Program-made: the position numbers and the translations under genes | The notes under the pieces: model-generated | What the model was told of the DNA's origin: nothing | The model's database searches: none | What the model saw: the letters and a program-made list of their open reading frames with translations, nothing else | Assembly (NCBI RefSeq): GCF_902459465.1 | Contig: NC_047081.1 | Location: 7,564,001-7,628,000, forward strand | DNA from: Asterias rubens | Taxonomy: Eukaryota | Length of the DNA stretch: 64,000 bases | Direction of reading: 5' to 3' | In this document: positions 6,801 to 62,171 of the stretch, piece by piece | Layout: the number at the start of each line of letters is the position of its first letter | Numbering within the stretch: the stretch's first letter is position 1

Positions 6801-9800
6801 CATAGCGCTGCTTAGCTCAACAATTTGCTTAGCACAAAAATGTCTTCCTTGATAACAACAGGATTACCAACCAGATTTCCATTTGTTGCATATTGCTTGT
6901 TACAGGTATTCAGCTGTTGTTTGCTTATCCTGAAAATCATGTGGAAATCTGGTTGGTAATTCTGTTTTTATCAAGGCAAAAAATGTCATGCTGAGCAAAT
7001 TTTTGTGCTTAGCAGCTCTATGAAATTGGCCCCTGAACTGCGAAGGACACGGCTACAATGTATACGAGAAGCAGGCTCGCAAGAAACCTTAGGGCTGCCA
7101 GCCACATCAACCCAATTCACAGCCCTGGCCGGGAATAGAACCGGGGTCACCTTGGGGAGAGGCGAGTGCTTTACTCACACGCCAACCATGGAGAGACATG
7201 AAGGAGAGACACTTTGTCGTTAACATTTTCAACAACTAGCAAGAAGAATGTTCGTGAGACTTCTCAGTTCTGAAAAAGAACTGTCCTGCTTTTGAAAACT
7301 AATACTAAAGGTGGGAGGTATAGAACATTGGCTGGGACTACTACTTTAGCTTATAACTACCGCAGAGTCAATTCCTGACGATGACAAGAGCAAGCTAGTC
7401 GAAATGTTGAGACCAATTTCAAGAACTGACCCGCGGTAGTGCAGTTACAAGTACGATCATCCGATAAATCTACTCCGCCCGCTATAGTAGAATAAAGAAA
7501 GAAACCAAATGTATCCCAACATAATGAATGAAAAATAATTCTGTGAAAATTTGTACTCAATTGGTCATCGAAGTTACAAGAGACTAATGCAAGAAAAAAC
7601 ACCCTTGTTACCCATATTTGCGTTCAGATGCCTAATAAAAGTCTTCAGGCCTGCCTGAGTCGTTTAATATTTGAAAGCTCCCAATGGGAAACTATCTGCC
7701 AATCACCAAGAGAGGGCGCTCTTCACCAGGTAATGTCAACAACTTAGGAATAGGAGAAGCATGAGTGACGGTCACTGACAGCAAATACCTTGTGTTTTGC
7801 TTGTTTTTGATTTTGTATTTTAGATTTAGCCAAACTGTATTTTGTTTTTCGTAACACATTGCCAGCATAAACCAAACTGTTCTGAAACAGGACGTACTGG
7901 ACACGAGTTCCCCAAGAATAACAAGCGATGTGCATGAGTTTTGGGGAGTGTTTCTTCTAGGGTAATTAGCAAAAATTCCAAAATGCTGACCTACCAAAAC
8001 TTGAGAAAAAATCTGAAGTTTAGTTGTATGACAATGTATCCGATTTAATTTTCAAGAGGCTGAGAGACTTCTATATATTTTTTGAGTATTTTTGAATGTT
8101 TAGTATTTACCATTGTTTGCTATAGTAGTTGTGCACCCTTACCTGGTAGGTCTGCTGCCCTCTAGTGGCAGAGCTTTCAAAAAGTCTCCCATTGCTCAGT
8201 AGCGAGTAAGTTTTTATGCTAACGAGAAATCATGTACACATATGTATTTTATGTAATGTCTCATGCCAAAATAAAGGCAATTCTCAGAAATTTAGTGGAA
8301 AATAAAAGAAATAAAAGTGAAGGCACTGTGACCGATGTGATGTGATGCCCCAAACAATGGCCTTTATTACTCATTTCTTGCTGGTCCAGATTTTATTAGT
8401 TTTATTTATTTTTCAAATAAGGATCCAGGATAGGATTAAGGATGCACCATTACTCATAGTTCACATATAAAATTGTACAACCTTTTATTAAATGAGGAAC
8501 TTGATTATCATCCAAAATACAATAAGCCTTTTTGAGATATGGCGGACACAATGCTACAACACTAAGGTTTGGGTAAATCTGTCTGTGTGTACCCAAACCA
8601 CCTCCATGCCCAAACCAGACAGTACACCCCTAATCACGTCCGCCATACCTCAAAAAGGCTTATACTTTGCCTCACTGTAGCGTTATTGCCTCAAAGTCAT
8701 TGTCCCCATCTGCAATCAGGTTATTGTGAAAATTTTCTTAATGAGTCATGTGAGAATTCCCCTAAAAAGCACCGCAGATGAAGAAAGAAAAACTGTAATC
8801 AATAGATTTTAATTACAAAGGTTGTTTTTGGCTCCCAGCCACGATGCTGATTAAACAATATGGGGATAACAAAGAGTACACAATGGACTCTGACAAGTTA
8901 AGCTTTGTGGTTTGTTTATGTGGCTAGGATTGTGAAATGTAGGCCTATTAGGGAAACCCCCTCAGTCTGCGCAGTATACAAAGTGAAGTGTTCCACATAC
9001 ATGTATCAGCAGTTTCACCCAGAACAAATAGGTTGAATCATACATTTTATGACTGCCTGCAGTTTCATTGCTACAGTATAAACCCTGCTCTTTATAGATC
9101 GAAATGTGAACTCTGTTCAACGGGAACCTCCCCCACCCCACCCCATAACAAAACAAAACAAAAAACTCACTAAAAATTGATAATAATACTAACAATAACT
9201 AGTTCTTATAGTGCCCTGGTCATTGGGCAAGTATCATTCCATTAATAATAATTTAGGGGGGCAAATCATCCTTACTTGCAGCATGTAAGAGCTGAGTTGC
9301 AAAGGACGCGGCTACAACGTGTTCGAGAAGCAGGCATGCAAGGGCGCCTTTGGCTGCCAGCCACATCAACCCATTATAACCACGGAGCACAGCCAAGATC
9401 GAAAGTGTTTGATTTTTCCCAAGCGAGGAAAATCGGATGGTCTGGAAAACCCTCGTGGCACAGCAAAGAACCAATGCACAACTCAACTCACATATGGCCC
9501 CGGCCGGGAATCGAACCGGGGTCACCTTGGTGAGAGGTGAGCGCTTTACGCACACGCCAACCATTAATCCTTCCTATGCTCTCTTGTGAGTTGTTGTACA
9601 GTCCCAGGCTGCTTTTGTGTGCTTAATTAAGCAGCTCTATGAAATTTGGCCCAGTGGGTTTCACAAAGAGTCAGGACCAGTCTTATCTCTAGTTAGGACG
9701 AGTTAGGACTAGCCATACGTTTTTAATTTCCCCTAGGACTACTCCTAACTCTTCGTGAAATCGAGTCATCGACCCAAGGTTTCATAACCCACACCCTGAT

Positions 9801-12700: not shown

Positions 12701-13101
12701 GATAAGGTGAATCACACCAAACGTAAAACACAAAGCGAAGTATGAGCAGAAGCTATTTTGACTCTTTAACCTCTTCGTTCTAACTTTAAGCTTTTCTGTA
12801 GTTGGAAATGTGGAGTAAAGCATGTAGCACCAGTGAACCATTATTCAGTTCCAAGAAAGAATGTAACATTCTGAAGAAGAAAAAAAAGGGACAACAAATT
12901 CAAATTTGGTCGCATATAATTGTACAGTATCATCATGGATTACTCCACAGAAATCGATTAGGAATATTAATTTGTAAATTATAATGTATTACAAATTGAA
13001 ACAATAGTGAAGAACCTCAAATATGCACTACAGGAGAAACACTATAGATGCTCTTGAAAGCTACAACCCAGAGCTCAATTTCGTATGTAAGCATGTAACT
13101 G

Positions 13102-19319: not shown

Positions 19320-20468
19320 TCACAGGGTGGTTTGGACGGCATAAGGGCTGACAAGATGTGACGTTGACTTCTTCACCTTTTTCTTTGCCTTCTTTGGCGG
19401 TCGGACGCAGAGCGTCCTCCTAAACTTTCTCTTAAAGTTCTCATTGAGAAAGGCGTACACTATGGGATTATTGAAGCTATTACTGAAACCAATGAGCTGG
19501 ACAATCGCGAGCATCATGCGATTTTGCTCACTGTCAAGAAGTCGAAAGAAATCTCTGATGATGCTGACCACGTGGAAGGGCAACCAGCTTGCAGCGAAGA
19601 GGACTACGACCACGATCAGCATCTTAGTGGCACGCCTCTTGTTACGGAGTGACGAGGCGTTTGCCAGACTACCCGGGGCTTCAACTGGCGTGATGGCCTT
19701 GCGTATCCATAGTCGGTGCACCACACGGAGATACAGGATCGTCATAGTGAGAACGGGGATGATGTACAGGAATATGACCAGAAGGAGAGTGAAGGTTTTC
19801 TTCTGGTCGTGGTGCGGCCAGGTCTCACGGCAGAATTTGTACGTGGTGCCGCTTAAGAGGACCATCTCGACCTCCACCTCCATGACGAATAGCAGAGGGG
19901 ACACTAGGATCATTGAGAAGATCCACAGCCCGGCGATCAAAATGGCGGCACGGGTTGGGGTCTGGATGATACGCGCACGTAAGGGGTGGCATATCGCATG
20001 GTGGCGCTCTACTGCGATGGTTGTCAGGGTGAGGACGCTGGATACAACTGCAACCATGGTGATGTAGTTAAGCAGCTTACACATGAACGTCCCCAGGACC
20101 CAGTCTACGGTGATGACCTCCACCAGGGTGAAAGGGATGCAGAAGATGGTGACGAGGAGGTCGGACGTTGCCAGGGAAACGATGAAGGAATTGATGACCG
20201 TGCGCATGCTCCGTTTGGACGCAACTGCGATGACGACGAGGAGGTTGCCAACGAGCGACATGATGAATATCAACGTATAGGACGTGATGAGAAACGCATC
20301 AGCCCCCGGGGACAGATCCGTGGGGTCTAGACCAACATCGTACACCTCTAAGAACTCTTTCAGAGAGGAGAAGTTTAAACAGGCTAGAAGCTCATCGATA
20401 GATTTGTTCTTTAAGTGAGTGATGTCGTAGGGGATCAGATGATCGGAATCCATGCCTGCTTGATCCAT
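19320..20468 (-). CDS. QRFPR-like: Rhodopsin-class neuropeptide GPCR, QRFP (26RFa) receptor-like, 382 aa, single coding exon
   Basis: Seven hydrophobic segments with GN (TM1), LATSDLL (TM2), C then IAVERH (TM3), W (TM4), SWLPFH (TM6) and SNSFNNPIVY (TM7). IAVERH, AIVQLIGFSNS and PIVYAFLNENFK closely match my recollection of vertebrate GPR103/QRFPR. A strong acceptor (poly-T GGCAG) lies 6 nt upstream of the ATG, so the exon starts at 20474. Confidence 0.88.
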   Translation of the reverse strand: MDQAGMDSDHLIPYDITHLKNKSIDELLACLNFSSLKEFLEVYDVGLDPTDLSPGADAFLITSYTLIFIMSLVGNLLVVIAVASKRSMRTVINSFIVSLATSDLLVTIFCIPFTLVEVITVDWVLGTFMCKLLNYITMVAVVSSVLTLTTIAVERHHAICHPLRARIIQTPTRAAILIAGLWIFSMILVSPLLFVMEVEVEMVLLSGTTYKFCRETWPHHDQKKTFTLLLVIFLYIIPVLTMTILYLRVVHRLWIRKAITPVEAPGSLANASSLRNKRRATKMLIVVVVLFAASWLPFHVVSIIRDFFRLLDSEQNRMMLAIVQLIGFSNSFNNPIVYAFLNENFKRKFRRTLCVRPPKKAKKKVKKSTSHLVSPYAVQTTL

Positions 20469-43285: not shown

Positions 43286-46200
43286 ATGGCGAAAAACAAG
43301 CTGTATTACATTTGGAATTTCATTGAGAAACCCGGCAAGCCGAAAAGTCCCTTTAATTCCTTTCTGGAGATGTGGACGGAAACCACAAACTACGTGAAGA
43401 AGAATCCACAGTTTTTGTCGACTCAGCTTCACCGAAACCTCAATCCAACTGGTGGTAAGTCTGACGACTCGATTACGAGTGTAGGCTGGGTTGGGTGTAA
43501 TGGCGGAGGGGTATAGTTTAGACATAATAAGTTTAGAGAACTGAAATGAAGTTGTGGTGATTAAAGTGATCGAAGTGTGGGTTCGAATCCCGGTCATGAC
43601 ACTCGTGTGTCCTTGAGCAAGATACTTTACTATAATTAGTTGATGTTCTTCACCCATGGGTATAAATGGGTGCCTGCGAGGGTGTGAGATGTGAAAAAGC
43701 CTTTGGGCTGCTACAGATACCCACAACAGGTTGTGTATTCTCCCTAGGGAGCTTTAAGGATTGCAAGAATGTTAATATTGGTCCAATGACCACCAGCCGT
43801 CGATTTCACAAAAAGTTAGGACACATCTTATCTCTTAGGACGAATAACTCGTCCTAACTTAGGACGAGTAACTCGTCCTAACTTAGGATTAATATTAAGG
43901 TATGCATGCTACAGTGCAGGGTTGGGACTCGTCCTAAGTCATAATCCTAAGTTAGGAAGAGTTTTGCGAAACCGACGGCAGGGCACCATTGCAAAGCGCA
44001 TTGATACGGTTATTGTAAAATGCGCTATATGTACGAATTTGCTATAACTTATTCGCATCTTACGCAAACAGCACACTAAACAACGAAGAAGTTTTAGTAT
44101 GGACCTTGTCATACAAGGTATTTGTTAGGCAGCGTGTAAGTTGCAGGGCAACTTCAGTGCATGACACAGGACCAATTTGGTAGCACATGATCATTTTTTC
44201 AAACTGCCTTCACGACCCCCAAGAAAAAGGAAGACTCCGCCCCTACATTCAAATGTGATTGCCTTTTCTTCTTGAAGGTTACCTTGGGAACTGGTTGCCT
44301 GTTAATTGCCCGATCGTCTTAAAAAAAAGAATAAACACACACAACATATCATATAGGGACTCAAAACTCAATTTACTAGAGTATGGGAATTGACCACAAC
44401 CTGTAAAAACATTTTAAGGCGGGGGGGGGGGGGTAGGCGCGGGGGGTCACAAGGGTGTGCGTCATTTTTGTATAGGGTGTGAAATCTGGAGGTGTTTTTT
44501 TCAAGTTGGTGGAAGAATTTGTGAAGAAAAATATTCTTGCTTTAAAATCCCGTTGTAATAGTAATGTTCGGATAATAAATGATTTCAAACTAGTGTGACA
44601 TCTTTTAACTGTTCTTCATATTCCATTTTACAGGAGCATTCCCTTGCGTGAACCACGCTGCCTTTGACGGGACAGACTTTGAAGGGTTCGGCAAGCCGAC
44701 TCCAAAATGGTTTGAAGTCCTCAAAGCCACGACAGGGGACACTGTTGCTCACCCAGGTACGTGTGAACTTCCAGATAATAGCATCTAGGTTCCGTAGGTC
44801 AGCGTAAAAGTAACAACTCCCTACGTCTTATGTTCAACTGCACAATATTACAAGCTGAAACATTTTGCGAAACACTGGCTGTAAAAATAACTGAGTAAAA
44901 AAACAATTATCCACTCATTACAGTACAATAAACAAATTGTCAAGCATTAATGTTGAGCAAGTCATACTTGAAACTTTGCATGAAGATATAATCCAGTGAT
45001 GCTATCTCTTTAAGTGATATGGTGGTTCTGAGAAGATCCATTGCTTTATAACCAACTCGACAAATTTGACTAAAGACCATTGCATCAATTTTTTTTTTCC
45101 TCGTCGTGTCCTTGTCTGTCTCAGGGAAATATACAAAAGCATTATGCTTAAAAAATGTCCCTGCATGTTGACTAATGTAAATTGTTGTAGTTATTATCTT
45201 CAAATTCTATGCATTGCATCTGTCCTTCGTTATTACGTTCATCGATATTTGTTTTCTAGTGTATGCTTAAATTGCTATTGTTGACATGAAAATAAATGTT
45301 CATTGAATTGGATTGAACATTGAAACAAACTAATTGTCAACCATCAATGTTGGGCAAGTCATACCTGAAACTTTGCAAGTTTAAGGTACAATCATGTGAT
45401 GCACGCTCTTTGTGGTGGATTTGAGAAGAGTCGGTGCTGTAATAACCCGACCTTTCGTCTAAAGACCATCAAAGCATACTGATCGAAAGGTCGGGTGTAG
45501 TAACAACCCTCCACTTGTCATTGCAATATAAAAAAATATATATATATAAAGTGTTACCGGAAAATTTGAAACTTAAATGTTCTTATGTTAATGTTTGTGC
45601 TTATACTTTCCTGAGCTCTGTGAAAATAAAAATCATAGGAATATTACTCAGGTGGGATTCAAACCCACGCAGTTTCTTACCAACTGGACCACCGAGATTG
45701 CCCGGCAGCTATAGTAAATACAGAGGCAGTAAGACTGCTATACTTTCAGAAGCAGGTATACGCAAAGATGAAACGTTCTTTTGCTTTGTTTTTCCTTTGA
45801 TGATTTGTAAAAACTTACAGGCGGTTATCTTGAGTTTGGGACCACCACTGGGAAACCTCTTGGCCCATGGTTACCCAAGGATGATAAGACCACGTTCATC
45901 GTGACTGCATTTAAGGTAAGATTAAACGAAAACGAAGTAGTCAGTTGGGTGTTTCGTTTTATTGAGAAGTAGATTATGCTCAAACAAAGACATCTTAATT
46001 CGCCTAGCTCTTTCTCCCTTTTTGTTGTGCCAAAAATCCGCTATTCAACGTTTGCAGAGAGAACTTTCTCTGTAAATGGCCCCAAAATGTGAAATAAGCT
46101 TCCTGTTCAAATCAGAAATGCCAGCTCACTTACCTCGTTCAAGAAATTAAAGCTGATTTGTTTCAGCCGGCTTACAAATAAATCACCTGCACTAGTGGAA

Positions 46201-46990
46201 GTGTCGTGGCCGAGTGGAAGAGCACCGAATTCAAACTCTGGTGTTTCTGATGATCAGCAGAGTGTGGGTACGAATCCCCAGCCGTGACACTTAATGTGTC
46301 CTTAAGCAAGACACTTAAACATTGCTTCTTCCTTCGGATGGGACGTAAAGCCGATGGTCCAATGTGTTGTGTAACGCATGTAAAAGAACCCAGTGCACTT
46401 TTCGAAAAAAGAATGGGTTCGCCCCGGTGTTCCTGGCTGTGGCTGCTGTATGCGCCGTAGCACCTTGTAAACCCTTATAAGGTGCTGAATAAATGGGTCT
46501 CAAAATTCATCACTGCATCTTTCTGAAAGTTTGTATATAGACGATGTGACCTGTGACATCACATGTTTACAAAAGAGACACAGAGCAAGGACTTCCTGCA
46601 GGCATGCTTTGTATACAACTCAATGGAAGAAAACATAAAATCTTATATTTTATGGAGATTGCACTGTCTAATTCTTATCAACTTTTGATGTGGTGAAAGG
46701 GGGCACATCTCAAAACTTGACCAGCTTTTACTTCACAACTCTTGGTTTTATGTGAAAATTATGACACAAAAATATGTCAACATTCCCATAGGACCGGTGT
46801 AAGCAGCTTGCCTGCCAGAATACTCAAAGAATGTACAAGGTCACACTTATTGTAAACAAGGTTCACATGGTCTAAACTCAGCGCCTTGAGTACCTTGTTT
46901 GTTAGATACGCACGGTGCGCTATAATATAAGACTTCGATATCAGTGCATCCGCGCCTTTTAGAGCAAACCTTTGACTTTGCGCTCTATAA

Positions 46991-47022
<32 letters not shown>

Positions 47023-47635
47023 ATTGATTGGTTGATTAATTGATTGATTGATTGATCTGTCCTTTCTAAAACCATCAGAGTAATTTATCTTTTTCTCTGT
47101 CACTCTCTCTCTCTCTCTTTGTAATTGTATTAACTCCGTGAGAGACAAACGTGTCTGTCAAATGGTCGTTAGAGCTCGCCATTTTGTTCTGCATATTGTT
47201 TACGGTATCAATAATGAGAAAACGTCTTATCCAACACCATCCCAAAACCAACATCATTTAGTATCACTCTTTATATAGGCAGGTGACGAGAAGGACGCCA
47301 AAGCACAGGAAGCATTCGAGAAAGATTGGAAGGAATCTTCAGGAACCAACTTCATCCTCAAGAATGCTCCCAAGGAGCTCGGCATCTCTTACTGCGGCCT
47401 GTATAAGAAGTTTACTGAGCGTCCCGGGATACTCTACGTCCTCAGAGCTGAGCTGACCGGGGCTGGTGAGGACTCTGAGCCGGCCAAGACCTTCCTGGCA
47501 CAACTCAAGGAGTTCAAGTATCCGGACTATTTCCAGAAGGTGGACACCGATCTCTTCAAGCCGGACCAAGAAAATATTCATTTTTCCGAGGGTGGGGTGA
47601 GGGAGCTTCCGGCAGGCTTCGTGTGGAAGCCATAA
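43286..47635 (+). CDS. Tandem paralogue 1: two-domain ABM-like (dimeric alpha+beta barrel) protein, ~247 aa
   Basis: Join 43286-43454, 44634-44756, 45821-45915, 47279-47635; GT-AG introns, phases 1,1,0, open frame throughout. MAKNKLYYIWNFIEK...NPQFLSTQLHRNLNPTG-GAFPCVNHAAFDG...AHPG-GYLEFG...FIVTAFK-AGDEK...FEKDWKESSG...WKP*. Confidence 0.85.
43555..43795 (+). mobile_element. tRNA-derived SINE fragment in intron 1 of paralogue 1
   Basis: GGTTCGAATCCC followed by the GTCCTTGAGCAAG...GTATAAATGGGT core typical of invertebrate SINEs. Confidence 0.6.
46036..46165 (+). mobile_element. L2/CR1-type LINE ORF2 3' end fragment
   Basis: With a frameshift: YSTFAERTFSVNGPKM / NKLPVQIRNASSLTSFKK. Confidence 0.6.
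46197..46530 (+). mobile_element. tRNA-derived SINE in intron 3 of paralogue 1
   Basis: A box GTGGCCGAGTGG, B-box-like GGTACGAATCC, GTCCTTAAGCAAGACAC core; an inverted partial copy lies at about 3025-3200. Confidence 0.65.
46990..47118. repeat. (ATTG)n and (CT)n microsatellites
   Basis: Direct reading. Confidence 0.9.
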
Positions 47636-48021
47636 GCTCTGATAGAAACGCAGCAAACAAACCTGACCCGGTTTCAAAGAGCTGGTAATAGCAGAGAATA
47701 TTGCTTGTAAAATTTCTGCTCACCAGAAATGAGCAGGTTTCCATTCACACGAAGTTGTGTGCTTTCAGATGCTTGAGTTCGGGACCTTAAAATCTAATTC
47801 TGAGGTCTCGAAGTCAAATTCAAATAATTATATTCAAGTAGAAAATTACTTATTTCTCGAAAATGACATTACTTCAGAGGGAGCCGTTTTTTCCAAATGT
47901 TTTATACTATCAACAACTCTCGGGTTTTATGCTCACAAGTTTAGTGTTTGTGTATAATGAAGAGAAGCAGCGCAGTTTAAACCAGAAGCTTTTAACTTAT
48001 TGCCAAGAGATAATCAAACCT

Positions 48022-48356
48022 TTAAAGACACCGGACGCTATTGGTAATTGTCAAAGACCAGTCTTCACAGCTGGTGTATCTCAACATATGTAAAATATAA
48101 CAAACTTGTGAAATTTTGTGCTCAATTGGTCGTCAAAGTTGCAAGAAAACAATAAAAGAAAAAATACCCTGGTCATCCGAAGTTGTGTGCTTTCAGATGC
48201 TTGATTTCGAGACCTTCCGAAAACTATGTCACTTCACAGGGAGCCGTTTCTCACAATGGTTTAAACTTATCAACCCCTCCTCATTATTCATTACCAAGTG
48301 AGGTTTTATGCTAATAAATATTTTGAGTAATAACCAATAGTGTCCACTGCCTTTAA
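48022..48356. mobile_element. MITE family A
   Basis: TTAA + TIRs; flanked by a 49-bp direct duplication (see findings). Confidence 0.8.
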
Positions 48357-51109
48357 ACCAGAAGCTTTCAACTCATTGCCAAGAGATAAACAAACCTTTA
48401 AGTTTAAGACAACTATTTTTAACCTGTCGTTATAGGTAAATATATTTTCTATGATGTTGATATAAGATGCATTGAGTTATTAGAATAAAAAGTTGTTATG
48501 TAAAGACAATAAAAACAGTTTACGGTAACTGTAGATTTTAGGGTCTTTCGGATAGTCGTAAAGCCATTGGACACTTTCGGAACAGAAGAAAAAGTTCACA
48601 GATTTACTTATGTCATGACACGGCGAAACGTGCGGAAACAAGGGTGGGTTTTACCTTTATTTTTTCCCGACTCCGATGACCGATTGAGCCTAAATTTTCA
48701 CTGGTTTGTGATGCACGAAGTGTGGGCCTTTGAATAATACTGTTTCCCGAAAGTGTCCAATGGCTTTAAATGAACACATTGCCTTGGATAGGGAGAGTTG
48801 GTCTTTATAAAAAGTGTTTGAAACCGTTTGTTGTTAAATGTATAATGGTTGGAAAGATGTTTTAAAAGTAGAATACAATGATCCGCACAAATGCCTTAAA
48901 ATTGCGTGGTTTTCCTCTTTAGTTGTGAACCACAGTCGGCCATTTTGTTGACTCGAAATTTTGACTCAAAAAATGGCCGACCTTATTGGTTCGCGACGTA
49001 AAACGAAAACCGTGCAATTTCGAGGGATATTTATGTGGATCATTATATTCTATTTCAAACATCTTTCCGATCATTTTGATTTCTTAACAAACGGTTTCAA
49101 ATTTTTTCATGGACCAGCTCGACCGATCCAAGGCAACGTGCTCCTTTAATATTTTCTTTTTTTGCACAGGCAAGCTGTGGTCTGTATTGTTGCACTAATA
49201 CCAGATTTGTATGATGGTGTAATTCACACAATGCATTCGCTAGGTGCTGTCAAAGAGTGTCTTATAATAAATCTGCAATTGAATTGCACTGGCAAAGAAA
49301 CCAATTTTAGAGTGTCTAAGGTATTTGTTGACTGAATTGAATTTAGAAATTAATGTTAACTTTATGTGTTTAAAAAAAAGAGTCACTGTTAAGAATTATC
49401 TTTCTGATTCGGAGTGGAAAATTCTACAAAATAACGGGCCGTGCATCTGTCATTACATTACATGAAACCACATACTTTCAAGGGATGCTAACGTGATTAT
49501 TATATTCTGCTTTTAAAATCGTATTTCCCTAAACATTCATACACCGGGGGCTTGTTAGCCCTAAAACGCCCAAACCAGGAGGCTTTGTATCACTTTAAAG
49601 CGCAGGTATTCCGCCGGAAAGTAGAACCTTGACATTGGTCCTTGACATCCCGTGACTTACCCATATATTGAGCACAAAGGACCGTGTATAAAGTAAATAG
49701 CTGCAATGACTGGACGTTTTTGAAGTTATTAGCATGATAATGAATATTGAACTTTCCTGACCCAAAGCACTTTGCTAAAAAGGTTTTGTTTACATTTTGT
49801 AGTTTAAGTGTTTAGGCCATGCCATGAATCCCACTGTGAATGAAGATGTACGTAATATAGTTTACCTGTAGAAGTTTCCGCCTGATTGTCTCAAGAGTTT
49901 GAGAGAAAAGTGAAAATCACAGAACGATGTTGTCAGGAGAGTCGCGTATAATACCAGCAATGGTAAATACGTTGTAACTGCTATAAAACAATTTGTCTCC
50001 CGAAATTAGTTTAGTATGTAGGCCTAATAACGTTGGTATAATGGCGCGACATAATTTATTTTCGTCACATTTGTTACTTATTATTTATCAAAAACTACAG
50101 CAAGTATAATTTGAGGGACTTAAAGCTTTCTACCATAATTGTCTTCAAAACGTAACAAAAAGTACCCACATCCTCCCCTTAAAAAGGGGGTTTGGGGAAC
50201 AGGGAACTATTGGTACGGCATAAAACACAAACGTCGCAGATTTACATTCCACACCAGGGCCCAATTTCATAGCGCTGCTAAGCAAAACAAATTTGCTTAG
50301 CATGAAATTTCGTCCTTGATAAAAACAGGATTACCAACTGAATTTCTACGTGATTTTCAGGATAAGCGAACAACATCTGAATACCAGTAGCAATCAATAT
50401 TGAACAAATGAAAATTTGGTTGGTCATCCTGTTTTAGTCAAGAAAGAAATTTCATGCTTAGCAAATTGTTGTGCTTAGCAGCTCTATGACATTGGGCACA
50501 GATGGTATAGAACCCTATATCGAACAATTAAAATACTACTAGCTCCTCATGTACCGTGCGGTGCTCCTGTATTCCTTGCTGGTGAGGTGTTGTTTATAGT
50601 TTTGGGAAGCTACAGGTAAATTACATTACATGCATCTTCATTCATAGTAAGTGGGGACTCATGTCATGCGCTAAAAACTTACAAACTAAGGATATCAAAA
50701 CTCTGTTAAGCCAGATGGTGGTTTGCAAAGTGCCTTAGGTCATGAAAGTTTAAAATTCAGTATTGTGCAAAAACGTCCAGTCATTGCTGCTTGTTATTAT
50801 TATTATATTTATTTAGGTCATAAAAGTTCGATATATATTATTATGCTAATATTTACAAAAAGGTCAAGTCATTGCAGCCAACACAGACCATTGTGCCACC
50901 ACAAGGCGAGGATGCAGGTACGAATATTTCGGTTATTAAGCACAACGCAGTTTCATTTCACAAGTATTGAGAGGGACGCCCGTCCTCAAAGTCGACGTAT
51001 GCGCAGATTACTCAATGTGTAATATTAACCGTCGCAAAACCATCAAAAACGAAAAGCTCCCTAATAGACTGAGCAACTAGCCACCGCAAGCAAAACTAAC
51101 ACAACAAAA

Positions 51110-51635
51110 ATGGCAAAAAACGAGCTGTATTTCGTTTACAACTTCATCGAGAAACCTGTCGTGGTCCCTCCATTTAGATCCTACGTAGAGTCGTGGTTCC
51201 AGACGGTGCTCTACGTGAGAAAGAACCCACAGTTTCTGTCTACCCAGCTTCACCGAAACTTGAACCCGAAGGGTAAGTCGATCCTAATGACTCCAAAGCT
51301 GCAGTGGTTATTAATGTTCTACGTGGTCAGGGTCCCTCGCTGCAGACTTAACACAGCAGTGGTGCAAGTCAGAAAAAAGAATAAGGAAGGGGTGTTAAAA
51401 AGTACAAGTATTTAGTGATGATAATGATACAGAATGTTTTATGCAGACAAACAAAATGTCCCCCTGCAAGGGGGGGGGGGGGCTCCAATCCCTTGTGTCA
51501 GGCTAGTAGACCCTCATACACTCGCCATTGTCCACGCTTTAATTGGATTGATGAGCATTCGCTGATAATTTTCCATTTTAGTTGGGCACGCGCGTTGGCA
51601 ATTTGATGATACTTAAATAGGGCCGTAGGGATGAT

Positions 51636-51666
<31 letters not shown>

Positions 51667-53349
51667 GGGGGTGGGGGTGGGGGTGGGGTGGGGGTGGGGG
51701 ACATTATGGGAACAACCAAGAGGCAGTGGGAATTTGCCATGTACCATAAAATGAGCTACCCTGGATCATGGGAATGGGCTACCCTGGATCATGTGAATAA
51801 GCTTCCATGGATCATCGGAATGAGCTAGATCATAGACTGATTTTTACTTAGTATCTTGTTCTACCTCTAAAGAGTATTTTTCAATCTTCCATAACCGACA
51901 GGGAAATACCCCCTCGTGAACTATGCTGCCTTTGACGGGACAGACTTTGAAGGCTTTGGCAAGCCATCTGAAACCTGGGATAACGTACGTAAAACATCCG
52001 TGGGGTCGACTACTATGCATCCAGGTAAGTCTGGAATAAACGAGCGTGAACAAAAATTATTCAGTTTTACTTCCCTCGATCTTTAAAGGCAGTGGACACT
52101 ATTGGTAATAACTAAAAATAATTAGTAGCATAAAACCTTACTTGGTAAAGAGTAATGGGGAGAGGTTGATAGTAGAAAACATTGTGAGAAACGGCTCCCT
52201 CTGAAGTGACGTAGTTTTCGAGAAAGAAGTAATTTTCCACGAATTTGATTTCGAGACCTCAGGTTTAGAATTTGAGGTCTCGAAATAAAGCATCTGAAAG
52301 CACACAACTTCGTGTGACAAGAGTGTTTTTTTTTTTTCATTATTATCTCGCAACTTCGATGACCAACTGAGGTCAAATTTTCACAGGTTTGTTATTTTAT
52401 TACATTTTTTTTGTTGAGATACACTAAGTGGGAAGACTTGTCTTTGACAATTATCAATGGTGTCAAGGGTCTTTAAAACATCACGATGGTACCACTGGCA
52501 AACGCATAATCTCCCCGCCCCTTTAGAATTCGAACATGAAACGCTCCATACAGTCCATAAATTGTCCGTGGGTATATACCAGCTCTTATAATATTTTAAT
52601 AATTTGTCAACTTACAGGCGGTTATCTTGAGTTTGGGACCACCACTGGGAAACCTCTTGGCCCATGGTTACCCAAGGATGATAAGACCACGTTCATTGTG
52701 ACTGCATTTAAGGTTGGTATTTATAAATATAACAGTTAATAAACTGTCACTTTTATCATTAACATCTTTAAACAAATTCAAGGGATTACAATATTTTTAA
52801 ACTCGTGGAATTTTGTCCGCCTGTTTTTTTTTTATTATAGTTATAGCTCGTTTGTTTTTAACTGCTTTTACTTTTTATTTAATGAGAGACAATTTAAATG
52901 TTATTGTTTTAACTGTCATCAAATCACGGTTTATATCAAAATTGAGACTAGGATGTGTATGCCTCATGATAGTTTTGTTTGCACTTGTTTAGGCAAGTGA
53001 CGAGAAGGACACCAAACTCCAGGAGGCATTCGAGAAAGATTGGAAGGAATCTTCAGGAACAAACTTCATCCTCAAGAATGCTTCCAAGGAGCTCGGCATC
53101 TCTAACTGCAGCCTGTATAAGAAGTTTACCGAGCGTCCCGGGTTGCTGTACGTCCTCAGAGCTGAGCTGACCGGGGCTGGAGTGGACTCTGAGCCGGCCA
53201 AGACCTTCCTGGCGCAACTCAAGGAGTTCAAGTATCCGGACTACTTCGAGAGTGTGGACACGGATCTCTTCATGCCGGACCCAGGAAATATTCAATTTCC
53301 TGAAAGTGGGAAGAAGGAACTTCCAGCAGGATTCACATGGAAGCCATAG
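51110..53349 (+). CDS. Tandem paralogue 2: two-domain ABM-like protein, ~245 aa
   Basis: Join 51110-51272, 51902-52024, 52618-52712, 52993-53349; GT-AG introns, phases 1,1,0; same exon architecture and motifs as paralogue 1. Confidence 0.85.
52083..52476. mobile_element. MITE family A in intron 2 of paralogue 2
   Basis: Near-consensus copy with TTAA flanks. Confidence 0.85.
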
Positions 53350-54282
53350 ACATAGCTTGGCAAGGAAACGCAGCAGCGGTCGATTTCACTAAAAATTTTA
53401 TAGGATTAATCTTAGGACTTAGGACGAGTAAAGTTCCGTATCCAAATACGTAGGACGCATTGAACCCATCCTAAGTTAGGACGGGTTTCTCGTCCACACT
53501 CGAGATAGGATTAATTATAGCGTTTCTCGGAAATGGCTGTATGAATCATAAGGTAGCTACTCTAGTACAAATACCTCAGAAAGATTTGTCTTTTTAAATG
53601 TTTGCCTATGGAAGAATTAGATTGATTCGTTAAATCTTGAACAATCACATTTTGGAAGAGAAAATTGTATGACAATTTCTAGCTGTAAATTTAGAAATGA
53701 ATAACCAAAGGTGAAAAGAATGAAAAAAATTGTTCCTGATCGTCAACCTTTTAAAAATGCGTAGCAGTAGTTTTAAATAGAATTAAAGTAGACGTTGTTT
53801 TTCAAAATGTACTGGATATAGGCCTACAACTTTGGTAATTTTCAAAGACCAGTCTTCTTATTTTGTGTATCCCAACATGCATAAAGTAACAAACATGTGA
53901 ACAATTTGAACTCAGTCGGTCATCAAAGTTGCGAGATAACAATGAAAGAGAAAACACCATTGTCGCATCCCAGTTCTGTGCTTTTGTATGATGCATTGAA
54001 TTAGAGACCTCAGCTGAAGTCTCGAATTCAATTCAAATAATTTAGTGGGAAAACAATTCTTTCTCAAAAACTACGTTACTTCAGAGGGAGCCGTTTCTCA
54101 CAATAAAACCAAACAATAATACGGTCAAATCTTGATTTTGTTAACAAACTATACTATAGAGGTTTTCATCAACAGGCTTAGTGACAAAAGTAGGCCTACT
54201 ATAGGTGTTATATAACATTGAAATCTATATTTTCAGTTATCATTGATAGACAAAACCAAAATATTTCAAAACCATTTCGCTC

Positions 54283-54666
54283 TTAAAGGCAGTGGACACT
54301 ATTGGTAACTGTCAAAGACTAGCTTTACAGTTGGTGTATCTCTCTAAAATGCATAAAATAACTAACCTGTGAAAATTTGAGCTCAATCGATCATCAAAGT
54401 TGCGAGATAATGTAAGAAGAAAACACCCATGTCACACGAAGTTGTGTGCGTTTAGATGCTTGATTTCGGGACCTCAAGTTGTAAACGTGAGGTCTCGAAA
54501 TCAAATTCGTGGAAAATTACTTCTTTCTCAAAAACTATGGCACTTCAGAGGGAGCTGTTTCCCACAATGTTTTATACAACCAACCTCTCCCCATTACTGG
54601 TCACCAAGAAAGGTTTTATGCTAATAATTATTTTGAGTAATTACCAATAGTGTCCACTGCCTTTAA
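54283..54666. mobile_element. MITE family A
   Basis: Both TIRs and TTAA flanks; abuts a family B element. Confidence 0.85.
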
Positions 54667-55561
54667 AGGGAAACATTGCATTGGATCATGCGAGTTGGTC
54701 TATGGAAAGCGTTTGATGGTTGAATAGATTAAAAGTAAGAATGAAATTATCTACAAAAAACAACCTCAAAATTTCACGGTTTTCCTTAACGTCGTGGAAC
54801 ACGGCGCGCCATTTTGTGAACTCAAGATAATTTGACTCCACAAAATGGCCGATCGTATACGTTCGGAAAATGAAAGGAAAATCATGCATTTTCTAGGCAT
54901 GTTTATGTTGATCATCATATTCTACTTTTCCGCATTTCATAATAAATGTTTTCAACCGCTATCATAGTTCAACTCGCACAATCCAATGTGTACGTATTCC
55001 TTTAATCTCTATTTTTGTGCCAAAGTGTAAATGAGTATGTTATTTTCATTACCCGGAGGTAGAATAAATACACATTCATGAAAGTCACATTGAGTTTTAG
55101 AAGCAGTACCGTATCAGTTTGTTACCGCGTCTGGGTTCATGATGAATTATTCACGATTTGGACTTGGTGAATACATTTTGAGATTATCACAATCCGATGA
55201 TCCCTATACTAAAAGCGATAAGGAGTTGTTGATAGCGACGTCCACTGACCTTGGATTAAATTTAAATAAATATAATTTTCAAAATAATTAATATGAAACA
55301 ATATTCAACCAAGCTTGTTATACCGTAAAAAATGTACACCTCAAATTATGCACTGCATCTTCTAATATGTTAAAAGATACACCATATTCCTTCAGTAACA
55401 TTTAAAATTTATTTTAATGCTGTCACACAGAATATCAATGCACATTATGTCGAAATTATAGATACACACAATGGTTCAAAAATAAGCAGCAATTTAAAGA
55501 CAACTTTTAGATTATAAGGAAAGCGAGATGCTTTTGTTCACTAAGCGGTTATACCTTTCGA

Positions 55562-55944
55562 GCCAGTGGACACTACTGGTAATTGCCACAGACTAGCCTT
55601 CACAGTTGGTGTCTCTCAACATATGCATAAAATAACAAACCTGTGAAAATTTGAGCTCAATCGGTCATCGAACTTGCGAGATAATAATGAAAGAAAAAAA
55701 CACCCTTGTCACATAAAGTTTGTGTGCGTTTAGATGGTTGATTTGGAGACCTCAAGTTTTAAAACTGAGGTCTTGAAATCAAGTTCGTGGAAACTTCCTT
55801 CTTTCTATGGCCTTTCAGAGGGAGCCCTTTTTCACAGTTTTTTATACCATCAACCTCTCCCCATTACTCGTTACCAAGTAAGGTTAAATGCTAATAATTA
55901 TTTTAAGTAATTACCGGTATACCAATAGTGTCCACTGCCTTCAA
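55562..55944. mobile_element. MITE family A, ~320 bp upstream of paralogue 3 ATG
   Basis: TIRs and conserved body. Confidence 0.8.
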
Positions 55945-56261
55945 ATATAGACCTGCGAACCCCTGTAACAGTGGGCGTGACTTTCTGTGGATTTTATCAT
56001 GATTGACATAATCCTTCAATTCATGCAGGATTGCTCCAAACATTAGTAATATCAAGGTCACATGAAGAATGATATCTACAAGCGTATAGGTCATTGTATA
56101 CAAAACTAACCCAATTGCACAAACAGTCGGTTTATTGACACAATTTCGGCTTCGCACGCTAGGATTAAAGAGGCCCTTTGGTGACCTCGGTTGGTAAAAT
56201 ATTTTAATGGTAGTATAAACTGCTAGAGCAGAACCGACGACGTGGATCATTGCACTTCAAC

Positions 56262-59200
56262 ATGGCCGCCAGCAAGCCAAATCTGTTTTACATTTGGAAC
56301 TTCTTCGAGAAGACCGGGGGCTATAGCTCTCGTTTTTCGTCTTTCGTAGATTATTGGACGTTCGCCGCCAACGTCGTGAGGAAGAATGATGACTACATAG
56401 CGACTCAGCTGCACCGAAACCTCGACCCAAAAGGTAAAAACGTATACTGAGGGTATTCGAATTAGAGCTAAATTATAGCCTGAACTCAAACCGTGTTAAC
56501 TGTTACGTTTTTGACATGTAGCTTTACTATGAGAGCTATACCACCATGCATAATGTGTGTGTACCACTCATAGATCACTGGGTCCTTCGTCTGGTGATAC
56601 ACTAGTATGTGTTCAAGACTCTCCTGCTATTAATACCTGAACCAATGCCACAAGAGGGCGTGCTCACCCTTGACAGCTGGAAATTAACCGCATGAGATAG
56701 TAAGATAACAAACATCCAAAAGTGTCTTGAACAAAGGCTAGTGGTCTACCCGACGTTCACGTTTTTAGAGTACCAACGTACTGTTAAATTAGCCCAGGCT
56801 GGACTCACAGTGGCACTGACTGACGTCCAACAAGGCTACTATACAACTGCATAGACCTATATTAGTGGGCGTGACTGTCTGTGGATTTTATCATGATTGA
56901 CACATCAGGAGTCTGGCTCTTTGATTGTGTAATAATGTAAGTAGGATTTGAAACTGTGCATGGTGGAAATACGACATGGAAAGGTTTTCAGTAACACTAT
57001 ATATGTACTGACTATCTCTAATGAGTTGGGGTGGTTCTGAAAAGAACCGTTGATTTCAACTCGACGTTTTGATCAGAGCATACTGATCGAAACGTCGAGC
57101 TCCAGAAGGCGATCAGAGCATCTGAGTGAAACGTCGAGTTGAAACCAACGGTTCTCAGAACCACCCCAACTCATTAGAGATAGTCATTACATGGTGTTAC
57201 CGCAAACTTTTTCATAATGGTAACAATGTACTTTAGCTATCTCCAGAAGAGGATCAGAAGAATACTTTTTGCAACGTCGAGTTGAAACCAACGGGAAGCC
57301 AACTCATTTAGAGATTATCATTACAGGGTGTGTGACCACAAACATTTCTCTACTTTAAACGCGTTTAACTAAACTTTTAGACTTACAACTCAAGTAATAG
57401 GATAATAAATGATGATAAGTTTGAAAACTGCTTGGAAATTCCTTTAAAAAACTTTTTTTTGTAAACGTAGCCCCTACATTGAGCTTGGTTAATTTTGTTT
57501 TCAAACAATTACCGATTAATCTATAATATTGTGAAACAGATAGAAATGACAATGAGCACAGATACTTGTATCAATAGAACATAAACAAATTATTTTTGTT
57601 GTATACCCAAGAACTTGCTTTTTATCGTGAAATGCAGTGCCTCAAAATTGAACCAAAGTGTTTAAGTTCATTTCCAGCTTTCTCATAATAATAAAGGTTT
57701 TAAGGAGGGTGGTGATAAGGGCTAAAACTCTGCCTTCTTGCTACTCGAAAGGTCCTGAATGGTGACCAACCAAGTAGATGGTACTTAAGACAAACCTAAA
57801 TCATAAACAGTGCTAAAAACGAGGCCGAAAATAAAAGGTTAAACGTATGACCGGACACAACAACAAGATACTCGTGAGGTTGTGTTTTTGGTGAAATAAG
57901 TCAGTATTTGAAATAAGTCAGTATTTGAAGCGGTTATTACGTGCGTCATCAGTTTTGTTTTGTCGAAGAATCACAACCTACTTGCCATGTTTTTGTCGTA
58001 ACTGTAATTGACTGTGATGAACTTAAAACAGCTGTGATGCCTGCTGTAATTCCCTGTTTGTTCCGCTCCCCAAAAAATTCAACATATGTTTTTATTTGGG
58101 GTGAAGCGGGTCCTTTATATATGTCACCTTTCTTGAGGATAAGAGTCTTACACTTTTTGTCTCATCAGGCTGAACTTATTATCACAAACATTCATCTATT
58201 CGATCGTACGGAGCCCCTAAAGGGACAGGTAAAAAGAAAGTTGAAAAGGTATAACAAAAATAGCAAAAAAAAATCGTCCCCTCGAGATACTATTTCATTA
58301 CCTCGAAATCATTTTGTTCACTCGAAATATAATTTCGTTTCCATCAAAGTAATATCGTTACCTCAAAATACTATTTCATGGGAAGAAATAACATTTCGAG
58401 GTAACGAAATAACAGTGTTTTAATTACAATTTCAATGTTGTATTCCCGATCGGGAACAATTCTGTTAAGAAAGTTAGTTTGCAAGTTTTCAAAACTTTTA
58501 CCAACAGCTACCTTCCCATACGTGAATCATGCTGCGTTTGATGGAACGACCTTTGCAGCTTTCGGGCAAAGCAAACCAACAGCGGAATGGATGGAAGTCG
58601 CGAAAGAAGGACGTGGCGGCACGGGCACCACGGTAGCCTACCCGGGTAAGTCGTCAAAAAAACACGGCCTATTAAAAGTCCAAGTCACGCTGCAAAAATA
58701 TTTCACATGGCACTGGACAATATTGGTATTTACTCAATATTGTTAGCATAAAAAATTACTAGGTAACGAGCAATGAAGAGCTGTTGATAGTATAACACAC
58801 TGTGAGAAACGGTTCCCTCTGAAGTAACGTAATTTTTGAAAAAGGATGAGATTCTCACTAAAATATTTGAATTGAATAGCTGAACTCGCATTCAAGCATC
58901 TGTACAACAAGTAGCGTGTTTTAGTACAGCAAGGGTGTTTTTACCTAATCCATTACTCTCCCGCAACTTCGACGACCAACTGAGTTAAAATGTTCACAGC
59001 TGGGTTTGCATATGTTGAGATACATCAAGTGAGAAGACTGGTCTTATGTTGAGATACATTAAGTGAGAAGACTGGTCTTTTGACAATATTATTATCAAGG
59101 GTGTCCAGTGTCTTTAACCTAAACAAAACTTCAACGTTGTGGTCCGTTATATAAAATACATAAGCCCCGAGCGAGTTGACATACAGATGTTTTTACACAA

Positions 59201-60261
59201 TCGAGTCATTAATTATCTCAAGTATACTGAATATTAATTAACCCCTTCTCCCGTTTAACGTTACAGGTGGATACAAGGAGATCGAGTCTACCACCGGCAA
59301 ACCACTAGGTCCTTGGCTGCCCAAGGGTGATAACATCTTTCTCGTGTCAGCTTTTAAGGTACGGTTGACGACATCACATATCTATTCGTTCAAACATTTT
59401 AAACACGGAAAACGAATCGATAAAGTTAAGCAATCGATGTTTCGTTTCGAGCCAGTGTTGTTGACTCCAGTAAGTGTTGTTGACTGGAGTCGTTGTCTTG
59501 GACTCGAGTCGTGACTTCACTGGCTTGCGACCTGACTTGACTTTTGAAGAAAAACAAATGACTTATGACTTATCTTGACTTGAGCAAGAATGCATTGTCG
59601 CTTGACTTGAGCAAAACTTACTTGACTTGGTTTGAGCAAAAATGACTTGTTGCGACTTGACTTGATTTGAGAAAAAAAATTACTTGGCCAAAAACTGGCT
59701 ATACAGTTCTCGTGTTGGCAAGGATTTTCACGTGGGATGTTAAACTTTGCATTGTTGGTGAGGTTTGCGGTAGTATCTATCGTAATCTCTTTTGAGAATA
59801 TTGTTGCTCTGGAGTTGAGTACCACGGGTTCTTTTCAGAACGAACTATAAAATATCTCACTTGAATTTCACGTGGTGCTTTATTTTTGTTCGTGATAACA
59901 GGTAGCTGATGAGAAGGACACCAAACTCCAAGAGGCATTCGAAAAGGACTGGAAGGAATCTTCAGGAACCAACTTTATCCTCAAGAATGCTCCCAAGGAG
60001 CTCGGCATCTCTAACTGCGGCCTGTATAAGAAGTTTACCGAGCGTCCCGGGTTGATGTACGTCCTCAGAGCTGAGCTGACCGGGGCTAGGGTGGACTCTG
60101 AGCCGGCCAAGACCTTCCTGGCGCAACTCAAGGAGTTCAAGTACCCGGACTATTTCCAGAAAGTGGACAATGAGCTTTACATGGCGGATCCAGAAAACAT
60201 AATTTTCCCTCAAGCGGGGAAGAAAGATCTCCCGGAAGGCTTGGCGTACAAACCAGAGTAA
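56262..60261 (+). CDS. Tandem paralogue 3: two-domain ABM-like protein, ~253 aa
   Basis: Join 56262-56433, 58508-58645, 59267-59358, 59902-60261; GT-AG introns, phases 1,1,0. MAASKPNLFYIWNFFEK...YIATQLHRNLDPK-ATFPYVNHAAFDG...AYPG-GYKEIE...FLVSAFK-VADEK...YKPE*. Confidence 0.85.
57009..57320. mobile_element. Penelope-like terminal-repeat remnant with degenerate minimal hammerhead-like motifs
   Basis: Inverted arms around repeated CTC-CAGAAG(G/A)-GATCAG-loop-CTGATC-GAAACGTC-GAG units. Confidence 0.45.
58709..59117. mobile_element. MITE family A in intron 2 of paralogue 3
   Basis: Degenerate TIRs, conserved body, small internal duplication at about 59010-59080. Confidence 0.75.
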
Positions 60262-60519
60262 ATACGCCACCCAATGGAAAAGAAAACCGTCATTCATACG
60301 GATTTGCTTCTTATCGCGAACATTTTTACTCTAAGATCGTCAACATACAGTGTCAAAATTTCCTCGAATTTGACCGAAGCTTTTTTTGGATGGACTCTTC
60401 CCTCCTTTTGGTCAATTGGTGGTGGGGGAGGGGGAGGGGGGTCCGACACGCCCTTTTTTAGTAACGGTCCTGCTTCAGTAAATACGTCACACAATGGAAA
60501 GAAAACCATGTCGGTCAAA

Positions 60520-60975
60520 TAGTAGGGTCATATCTTTGGATTCCGTGACCATTCTTTTGCTGCCTTTTTTTTTTCGATGGATTTGACTTCAGGAACCATT
60601 TAAAGAAAAAGTTAGCCCTATGAACCTCTGAAATTTGATAGGAACTTTTTTTATAGCGCTATATTCAAAATGGCCGCCGACGCCATCTTGAAAAACATAA
60701 AATGTAATAGCTCTGGCACCAGATGACCTAAACGGACAAATGAGATGTCCTGTTCCACTATATCTGGCATGACAAATACACTGGAATGGTAATTGTAAGG
60801 TTTGGGGACCATCTTGACCTCTAAATCCAATATGGCCGCCGACGCCATCTTGAAAAACATAAATTGTAATAGCTCTGGCACCAGATGACCTAGATGGACA
60901 AATGAGATGTCCTTTTCCACTATATCTGGCATGAAAAATACACTGGAATGGTAATTGTAAGATATGACCCTACTA
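60520..60975. mobile_element. TA-flanked MITE with two ~168-bp internal direct repeats
   Basis: TIR TAGTAGGGTCATATCTT...AAGATATGACCCTACTA; internal unit AATGGCCGCCGACGCCATCTTG... occurs twice. Confidence 0.65.
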
Positions 60976-61999
60976 AAACGGACGACCCGTGCTTCTTATC
61001 GTGAGCTTACTAACAAACGTCAGTGTTATGTAATATTAAAATAAACAACCAGTTATCAACGCGACAGACACATTACACTTTATTTTAAGGCTTAAAGGCA
61101 CTGGATACTATTGGTATTAGAAAAAGGGGGAAAGCACCCAAAGGTAAAACGATAAAAATTTACATTAAATGTTGTACTTTGTGCCAACGTGTAAAATGAG
61201 TATTTTATTTTGTTCATAACCTGGAAGATAGTATGTAGAGTTACATTATTTAAAGTGTGTACCGTATTTTTTGTTACCCGCGGATGCCGGCGCCTACTGT
61301 TCACGATGAATTATTCATGATCTGGATATTTGTGACAAATATAACTTTGATATTAACATAATCCGATGATCACTGCATCTTTAATGTGGTGTAGACCTAA
61401 AATGTTGCGATGTTGGACAAGATTTTACAGGGGACCCTCCCCACTCCAAGATTATCGTCCTTTCACACGAGATACATTTTGTTAACTTGTACAACAATGC
61501 TACAATTAAGCAAGGGACTCGTGCTAAATCGCTCTCGTGTGAAAGGGGATTTTAAGGTCCGGTCACACAGGCCCTGATAACGAGAACGAAAACGAGAATG
61601 TCAACAATGCACAGCCACGATTGGTTAAATAAAGCGTTGGCGTATTCTGCGTGGAGCAATTCAACCAATAGAATGCGTTCTCTTTGGGTCGTTTATCGTT
61701 GACGTTTGCGTTACCGCTGCGGTGTGACTCCGTACGTCTTTCATATGATTGCTCAAAATAATGGAGAACAACCTATCTACTTAGTGTTTCGTCATTGTTT
61801 ATATAAAGTGACGCAATTTTACAAACACGAAGCTTATTTCCCAGTGTTTGTAAAATTGCGTCACTTTGTTGACACAATGACGAAACATTTGTACATCACA
61901 TCGGCTTTGAAAAAAGGGCCCTGCTGACCTCGGGTGGAAAACATTTTTAACGGTTAAGAACTGCTGAAGGACAGCCGACAGTGACCATCGCTCTTCAAC

Positions 62000-62171
62000 A
62001 TGGCCGCCGACAAGCAAAATTTGTTTTACATATGGAATTTCTTCGAGAAGACCGGGGGCTATAGCACTCGTTTTTCGTCTTTCGTAGATAATTGGAAATT
62101 CGCCGCAGAGGTGGTGAAAAAGAACGAAGAATACATAGCGACACAGCTGCACCGAAACCTCGACCCAAAAG
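62000..62171 (+). CDS. Tandem paralogue 4, coding exon 1 only (remaining exons not seen before the window end)
   Basis: MAADKQNLFYIWNFFEKTGGYSTRFSSFVDNWKFAAEVVKKNEEYIATQLHRNLDPK followed by a phase-1 donor G|GTAAAA. Close homologue of paralogue 3 exon 1, with shared flanking sequence. Confidence 0.8.

Follow-up and report, generated by a model that had tools for sequence, protein, structure and literature searches.

A tandem array of genes of the animal family DUF7153 occupies part of a 64,000-nucleotide stretch of the Asterias rubens genome (contig NC_047081.1, positions 7,564,001 to 7,628,000 of the forward strand), referred to below as the window and used for numbering. The array consists of at least five intact paralogues (g1 to g5); three of them and exon 1 of a fourth are inside the window, the rest being just downstream, and each gene product is a soluble protein of about 28 kDa without a signal peptide. 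These starfish proteins belong to the antibiotic-biosynthesis monooxygenase (ABM)/dimeric alpha+beta barrel (DABB) superfamily, and the genes and the family are already present in RefSeq and Pfam without an assigned function. In the natural-product pathways of microbes, ABM/DABB barrels are responsible for unusual oxygen chemistry that needs no cofactor; we know of no animal counterpart with such a role. Our tentative reading, to which we give a probability of roughly 35-40%, is that the N-terminal half (N-half) takes up a small molecule, planar or hydrophobic, which it oxygenates without a cofactor in the manner of ABM enzymes, with the C-terminal half (C-half) as its partner and with substrates that differ between the copies. 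Sequence and fold tie this animal family to ABM chemistry and single out residues N11, H48, N61 and F65. DUF7153 becomes a testable enzyme or ligand-binding candidate, and the half that would hold the substrate can be compared among the five natural variants of the starfish array.

Predicted fold of the array proteins

We ran AlphaFold2 on a 16-sequence alignment and obtained a model with a pLDDT (predicted local distance difference test) of 89.2 and a pTM (predicted template modelling score) of 0.88. In this model, a b-a-b-b-a-b unit (residues 7-103) is followed by the conserved linker GKPLGPWLP and by a second b-a-b-b-a-b unit (residues 120-228). The strands were placed at residues 7-13, 42-50, 59-65 and 97-103 and then at 120-128, 163-171, 180-186 and 212-228, with the helices between them. 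An independent ESM Atlas model of an echinoderm cluster superposed at a template modelling (TM) score of 0.93, and the scores to a bacterial tandem ABM cluster were 0.66/0.79. The prediction confirmed two ferredoxin-like halves fused in one pseudo-dimeric alpha+beta (DABB) barrel. The initial annotation of this DNA, made from the letters alone, had expected such a two-domain ferredoxin-like/ABM fold with the C-half repeating the topology; AlphaFold and Foldseek bear it out, and neither a different fold nor a well-characterised unrelated family emerged. This two-domain anatomy is described here for the first time, and the boundaries of the Pfam DUF7153 model (residues 48-211) cut across it, starting midway through the first half and stopping where the second half ends.

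A Foldseek search of the PDB placed tandem ABM proteins at the top (3mcs, 5f9p, 9kdp (PenE) and 3f44, E about 1e-7), followed by bacterial chalcone isomerase, chlorite-dismutase-like proteins and sulfur oxygenase reductase. VIA-align gave the highest score to 5f9p, an anthrone oxidase-like protein (Z 15.6, 201 residues, 3.3 A), with the ferredoxin-repeat protein 3gn6 at Z 15.1 and PenE at Z 14.1. The N-half alone matched SnoaB (Z 8.9, residues 4-105) and 2ril (Z 8.1, 20% identity), and the C-half alone matched olivetolic acid cyclase (Z 8.3). The tandem ABM oxygenases 5f9p, PenE, 3mcs and 3f44 carry the same two halves in each chain (Z 11.5-15.6 over 190-201 residues), but they are only 9-12% identical to the starfish proteins, and the latter do not match Pfam ABM. 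Known tandem ABM proteins are bacterial or fungal natural-product enzymes encoded in biosynthetic clusters, whereas the starfish proteins are products of intron-containing animal genes without such neighbours. Where a single-domain ABM protein has the partner subunit of a homodimer, the starfish proteins have a fused and diverged C-half. An internal duplication was not demonstrable by sequence (hhalign probability of N-half against C-half, 0.3%), and a C-half profile found nothing credible in the PDB, a serpin match at E 0.003 being taken as chance.

Sequence link to ABM proteins and a putative substrate-holding site

Searching with an N-half profile retrieved the Shewanella single-domain ABM protein 2ril with an E value of 2.2e-6 (2.3e-5 with the whole-protein profile). 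In the alignment STQLH faces STQLH, VN(H/Y)AAF faces INVAIW, and F65 stands opposite the Trp of the N-x3-W motif of 2ril; the STQLH strand and the N-x3-aromatic strand are thus common to 2ril and the starfish N-half. The profile match showed the N-half to be, on sequence grounds, homologous to bacterial ABM domains, a sequence-level link that is new here. The resemblance had been noticed beforehand from short motifs, and the match to 2ril and the fold both uphold it; the motifs themselves (YIWNF, STQLHRNL, VN[H/Y]AAF, PGGY, FIVTAFK, FEKDW..SG, GLYKK and LYVLRAEL) are all present.

Conservation was then scored over 14 ambulacrarian N-halves. Invariant residues were W29, T45, Q46, L47, H48, N50, L51, N61, F65, F73, P95, G96 and G97, and nearly invariant ones were N11, F12, F25, A63, D66, W80 and E100. 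Among these, N11 lies on strand b1, Q46, H48 and N50 on b2, and N61-x3-F65 on b3. It has been documented that ABM oxygenases hold the substrate with an Asn on b1, an Asn on b3 and a Trp four residues further on, namely Asn18/Asn63/Trp67 in SnoaB, Asn7/Asn52/Trp56 in RslO4 and Asn62/Trp66 in ActVA-Orf6 (PMC8093152). At the positions of the SnoaB-type site both Asn appear to be present in the starfish proteins (N11 and N61, the equivalence of N11 being drawn from aligned ranges), and the +4 position is the invariant Phe F65. Both residues of the Asn-Asn-water site of SnoaB and RslO4 would thus have counterparts in starfish, with Phe in place of Trp, and a SnoaB-type site, not described before in this family, may be partly retained. 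The C-half has an invariant set of its own (E141, W144, S148, G149, Y169, F172, Y180, R183 and E185), which contains no Asn pair.

A possible cofactor-free oxygenase and the alternatives

In the mechanism that we favour, the N-half would be the working half. Its conserved polar and aromatic set (N11, Q46, H48, N50, N61-x3-F65, W29 and W80) would reproduce the site at which SnoaB, RslO4 and ActVA-Orf6 hold their substrates, with an Asn on b1, an Asn on b3 and an aromatic residue at +4. A planar or hydrophobic small molecule would be held between sheet and helices and would react directly with O2, or would merely be held there. The C-half would be the structural partner that closes the barrel, because it is without those Asn and is nearly uniform among the copies. 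Compared with g2, the N-halves of the Asterias copies are 41-67% identical and their C-halves 79-86%; over all aligned relatives the ranges are 27-67% and 32-86%, respectively. Since the paralogues differ mainly in the N-half, their sequences suggest that they have different substrates or ligands.

A bolder version is that animals have, in DUF7153, their first cofactor-independent oxygenases of the ABM type and that the five copies tailor different pigments or secondary metabolites, with quinone- or anthrone-like polyketides, acetylenic carotenoids and steroid glycoside precursors as candidate substrates. We consider this version unlikely, and less likely still its variant in which one copy is the apoprotein of the Asterias carotenoprotein asteriarubin.

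Several observations weigh against an oxygenase function. Phe stands where SnoaB and ActVA-Orf6 have their substrate-orienting Trp, and N11 is placed opposite SnoaB Asn18 by aligned ranges, not by residue-level superposition. Pfam ABM (PF03992) gave no full-length match at E values up to 10, the best result being one of 14 N-halves at E 0.2. Many DABB proteins are not enzymes, and such proteins (NIPSNAP, stress-response Dabb proteins and ovorubin) are also among the fold matches. No second enzyme class was found in the 64 kb window or in the 8 kb downstream of it, and literature searches found no experiment on any member of the family.

A non-catalytic carrier is possible, if doubtful. The barrel pockets would then serve to store, transport or buffer a hydrophobic ligand (a carotenoid, a steroid or saponin precursor, a quinone pigment or a lipid), with preferences that differ between the paralogues; the fast divergence of the N-half beside a constant C-half fits a changing ligand specificity, and the exchange of the catalytic Trp for Phe also agrees with binding alone. 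The conserved polar residues N11, Q46, H48, N50, N61 and D66 in a hydrophobic domain are, however, more typical of catalysis. A precedent for carotenoid binding by this fold is ovorubin of the apple snail (9uaj_E), which aligned over both halves at Z 9.2, well below the tandem ABM oxygenases. Ovorubin is a secreted egg (perivitelline) carotenoprotein, unlike the starfish proteins, which carry no signal peptide. A. rubens itself has a purple carotenoprotein, asteriarubin, without an assigned gene according to a review (PMC10608541), but the asteriarubin subunits are about 11 kDa as against 28 kDa here.

It is rather improbable that the starfish proteins are modules for protein interaction or stress response that act like NIPSNAP or plant Dabb proteins and carry out no small-molecule chemistry. 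Among eukaryotic two-domain DABB proteins the NIPSNAPs are the best known, and the Swiss-Prot fold matches include NIPSNAP1/2/3 and Arabidopsis stress-response A/B-barrel proteins (E 1e-6, TM 0.45-0.59). Like ovorubin, NIPSNAPs are two-lobed animal barrels as here, but no sequence relation was detected to either, and Pfam NIPSNAP (PF07978), Dabb and all NCBIfam models gave no significant match to DUF7153 proteins. The sole sequence-level link is to an ABM protein, and the tandem ABM oxygenases outscore these fold matches. In addition, the starfish proteins lack a targeting signal, including a mitochondrial presequence, in contrast to the mitochondrial NIPSNAPs and the egg protein ovorubin.

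A heme-degrading oxygenase of the IsdG/LFO1 type is very improbable and was rejected: N11, W80 and the His at position 94 (g2 numbering) of g1, g2 and some relatives loosely recall the Asn-Trp-His triad, and the heme-degrading enzymes HmoB and LmHde are among the fold matches (Z 8.7-10), but position 94 varies among H, Y, F, L and M within the family, the spacings are 69 and 14 as against 60 and 10 in IsdG, and none of the IsdG enzymes characterised can do without the triad His (PMC5557675).

Gene models and extent of the array

Three complete genes, g1, g2 and g3, lie on the forward (+) strand of the window. Each has four exons, all introns are GT-AG with phases 1,1,0, the PGGY motif straddles the exon 2/3 junction, and the frames are intact as judged from stop-free segments and from tblastn with the assembled products. 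The predicted products of 247, 245 and 253 amino acids are, residue for residue, RefSeq proteins of A. rubens encoded by LOC117303850 (P0011), LOC117303629 (P0012) and LOC117303873 (P0009), respectively. The three genes are thus already modelled in RefSeq, where they are labelled 'uncharacterized protein', and these models agree with the initial annotation in their common orientation, exon number, intron phases and intact frames. It had also noted the lack of a signal peptide: we found neither a signal peptide nor a membrane segment in the products (maximum Kyte-Doolittle(15) score at most 1.07), the N-terminus being taken up by strand b1.

Exon 1 of g1 (43286..43454, +) runs from the ATG to a phase-1 GT donor, exon 2 (44634..44756, +) encodes VNHAAFDG to HPG, and exon 3 (45821..45915, +) encodes GYLEF to FIVTAFK and is the same as exon 3 of g2 at 94 of 95 nucleotides. 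Exon 4 (47279..47635, +) encodes the C-terminal ferredoxin-like half with the stop codon and matches Pfam DUF7153. In g2 the exons lie at 51110..51272, 51902..52024 (from tblastn and the gene model), 52618..52712 and 52993..53349, all +, the last including the stop codon and matching DUF7153 at E 1.9e-11. Those of g3 lie at 56262..56433, 58508..58645 (gene model), 59267..59358 (gene model and tblastn) and 59902..60261, likewise +; exon 4 again includes the stop codon, and its DUF7153 match has an E value of 1.2e-12.

The only exon of g4 inside the window is exon 1 (62000..62171, +), which is 88% identical in nucleotides to exon 1 of g3; tblastn found no further exon between 62171 and 64000 and no paralogue upstream of g1 within the window. 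We therefore used the same contig extended beyond the window end (L001), whose overlap with the window is identical. The rest of g4 was located at L001:10001-11965 (window 63848 onward), with exons 2-4 at extrapolated positions 64100-64237, 64816-64907 and 65453-65812. The completed g4 is intact and encodes 253 amino acids, and its exon sizes of 172/138/92/360 equal those of g3. The RefSeq model LOC117303984 (P0010, 217 amino acids) begins within intron 1 of g4 and leaves out the intact exon 1. A fifth intact paralogue, g5, lies at L001:13527-15987 and encodes 252 amino acids with 94% identity to P0001 of A. amurensis, and beyond it is a broken exon-4 relic with a stop codon and frame breaks (L001:18539-18781). 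The corrected g4 model and the true array size are new here. The earlier count of at least four genes with the same architecture holds once g4 is completed from downstream DNA; within the window itself the full architecture of the fourth gene is not visible.

Transcription and splicing

Public sequencing runs were compared with window positions 50800-56700, that is, from g2 to exon 1 of g3. An RNA contig from run X2 joined 51069-51271 to 51901-52021, which is the exon 1-exon 2 joint of g2, the boundary base being G on either side. A 507-nt contig from X1 fitted up to exactly the exon-1 donor of g3 at 56433, its other 308 letters lying off the compared stretch. Exons 3 and 4 of g2 were covered by contigs from X1 and X2, with an X1 contig spanning 52615-52710 over exon 3, and the 3' untranslated region (UTR) reached at least 54310. 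The bins of g2 intron 1 at 51391-51784 were empty in both runs, and X11, which is probably DNA, gave an unspliced contig across g2 exon 2. These results show that the tandem array is expressed, the RNA contigs examined covering g2 and exon 1 of g3, and they confirm splicing at the predicted junctions for the g2 exon 1-2 joint and the g3 exon-1 donor. Raw reads of X15 over exon 4 reached a depth of only 1-4.5x, indicating low expression in that sample. Intron 1 of g2 also contains a long G-rich, poly-Gly-coding simple tract (51630-51704), at which reads seem to be cut.

Family membership and distribution

Full-length relatives scored 62-90 bits against Pfam DUF7153 (PF23672), with P0001 at 62.5 and P0003 at 89.9, and exon 4 alone of g1, g2 and g3 scored 44-48 bits (E 1e-11 to 1e-12); the gathering threshold is 27 bits. 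The similarity to DUF7153 suggested in the initial annotation was thus correct. Full-text searches found no paper mentioning DUF7153, C01C4.2 or six LOC identifiers, in agreement with the earlier statement that the family is not known to have an assigned function.

Sequence searches turned up relatives only in asteroids (Asterias, Acanthaster and Patiria), an ophiuroid (Amphiura), crinoids (Anneissia and Antedon) and hemichordates (Glandiceps and Ptychodera); none came from sea urchins or sea cucumbers in these searches of limited sensitivity. When the exon-4 peptide was used as the single query of a HMMER search, 1.84 billion representatives yielded just 8 matches, and three long ones (P0005, P0007 and P0008) were discarded as artefacts of repeats or low complexity, with insect allergen and Listeria-Bacteroides repeats among them. 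Structure and atlas searches extended the family to arthropod, nematode, mollusc and amphioxus proteins. The entries named DUF7153 were Arthropoda clusters, the AlphaFold-cluster match K1R4I3 and A0A6A5FYN8, and the unnamed structural matches, which from their accession numbers we take to be amphioxus, insect and nematode proteins, include C3ZLI4 (25% identity, TM 0.78) and C. elegans C01C4.2. The starfish copies are bare proteins of 245-253 amino acids, whereas several longer look-alikes, presumably from insects and nematodes, have extra N- or C-terminal regions.

Tandem DUF7153 pairs were also found in Patiria and Anneissia. Asterias and the crinoid Anneissia have intron 1 at the same position and in the same phase, and their third introns occupy roughly corresponding sites. 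A pattern search with VN[HY]AxFD against 185,579 prokaryotic genomes gave 39 pattern matches, none of which was confirmed. Recent horizontal gene transfer was rejected in view of the intron 1 shared with Anneissia, the spread of the family across animal phyla and the failure to find a bacterial relative, and the same observations leave the initial suggestion of an ancient transfer without support. In a maximum-likelihood tree the Asterias copies formed one clade, split into (g1, g2) and (g3, g4, A. amurensis), indicating that the expansion to five is lineage-specific.

Divergence among the copies

To compare the copies exon by exon, we calculated synonymous divergence (dS). Between g1 and g2 the values were 1.17 for exon 1, 0.75 for exon 2, 0.045 for exon 3 and 0.24 for exon 4; between g1 and g3 they were 0.94, saturated, 3.47 and 0.45, and between g2 and g3 1.34, saturated, saturated and 0.39. 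In exons 3 and 4 the copies resemble one another from the acceptor up to the stop codon and no further; the adjoining intron sequence is unalignable. The low dS of exons 3-4 together with this exon-bounded similarity supports exon-limited homogenisation (gene conversion) of exons 3-4, possibly cDNA-mediated. The ratio of nonsynonymous to synonymous divergence (dN/dS) was 0.25-0.5 throughout, indicating purifying selection.

Genomic neighbourhood and repeats

The array had been proposed as a small-molecule tailoring cluster. A biosynthetic gene cluster was rejected, because several co-located enzyme classes are needed and the array holds only DUF7153 paralogues; the locus can be called a cluster only insofar as it is an array of paralogues, and the neighbours are G-protein-coupled receptor, coiled-coil and MTP-like genes. 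The receptor gene is a single exon of the rhodopsin family (19323-20468, -; 382 amino acids, Pfam 7tm_1 E 3e-61) 23 kb upstream of the array. Coiled-coil-rich exons at 877-12844 (-) have no Pfam match and end in a Cys/His-containing tail, CPRCKREFSADKTKQYRDHVGKC, which in our estimation recalls NEMO/optineurin-type zinc fingers. Downstream, a vitellogenin/MTP-type lipid-transfer gene of 886 amino acids adjoins the exon-4 relic on the opposite strand, and a gene that also encodes 886 amino acids flanks the two DUF7153 genes of Patiria miniata.

Within the 3' UTR of g2, positions 53845-54117 were skipped in the RNA contigs of X1 and X2. An intron was rejected, as the ends are not GT-AG. The piece is a copy of an interspersed repeat and looks like an insertion polymorphism missing from the sequenced transcripts. 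This short repeat, of very high copy number, occurs in introns and spacers at 52179-52375, 53845-54117, 54543-54739 and 55528-55724, with similar pieces at 17654, 26367, 31324, 39332, 47757, 48116 and 58730. Its translations recur as SKSEVSKSNSWKITSFSKTTSLQRE, and its depth was enormous in all runs.

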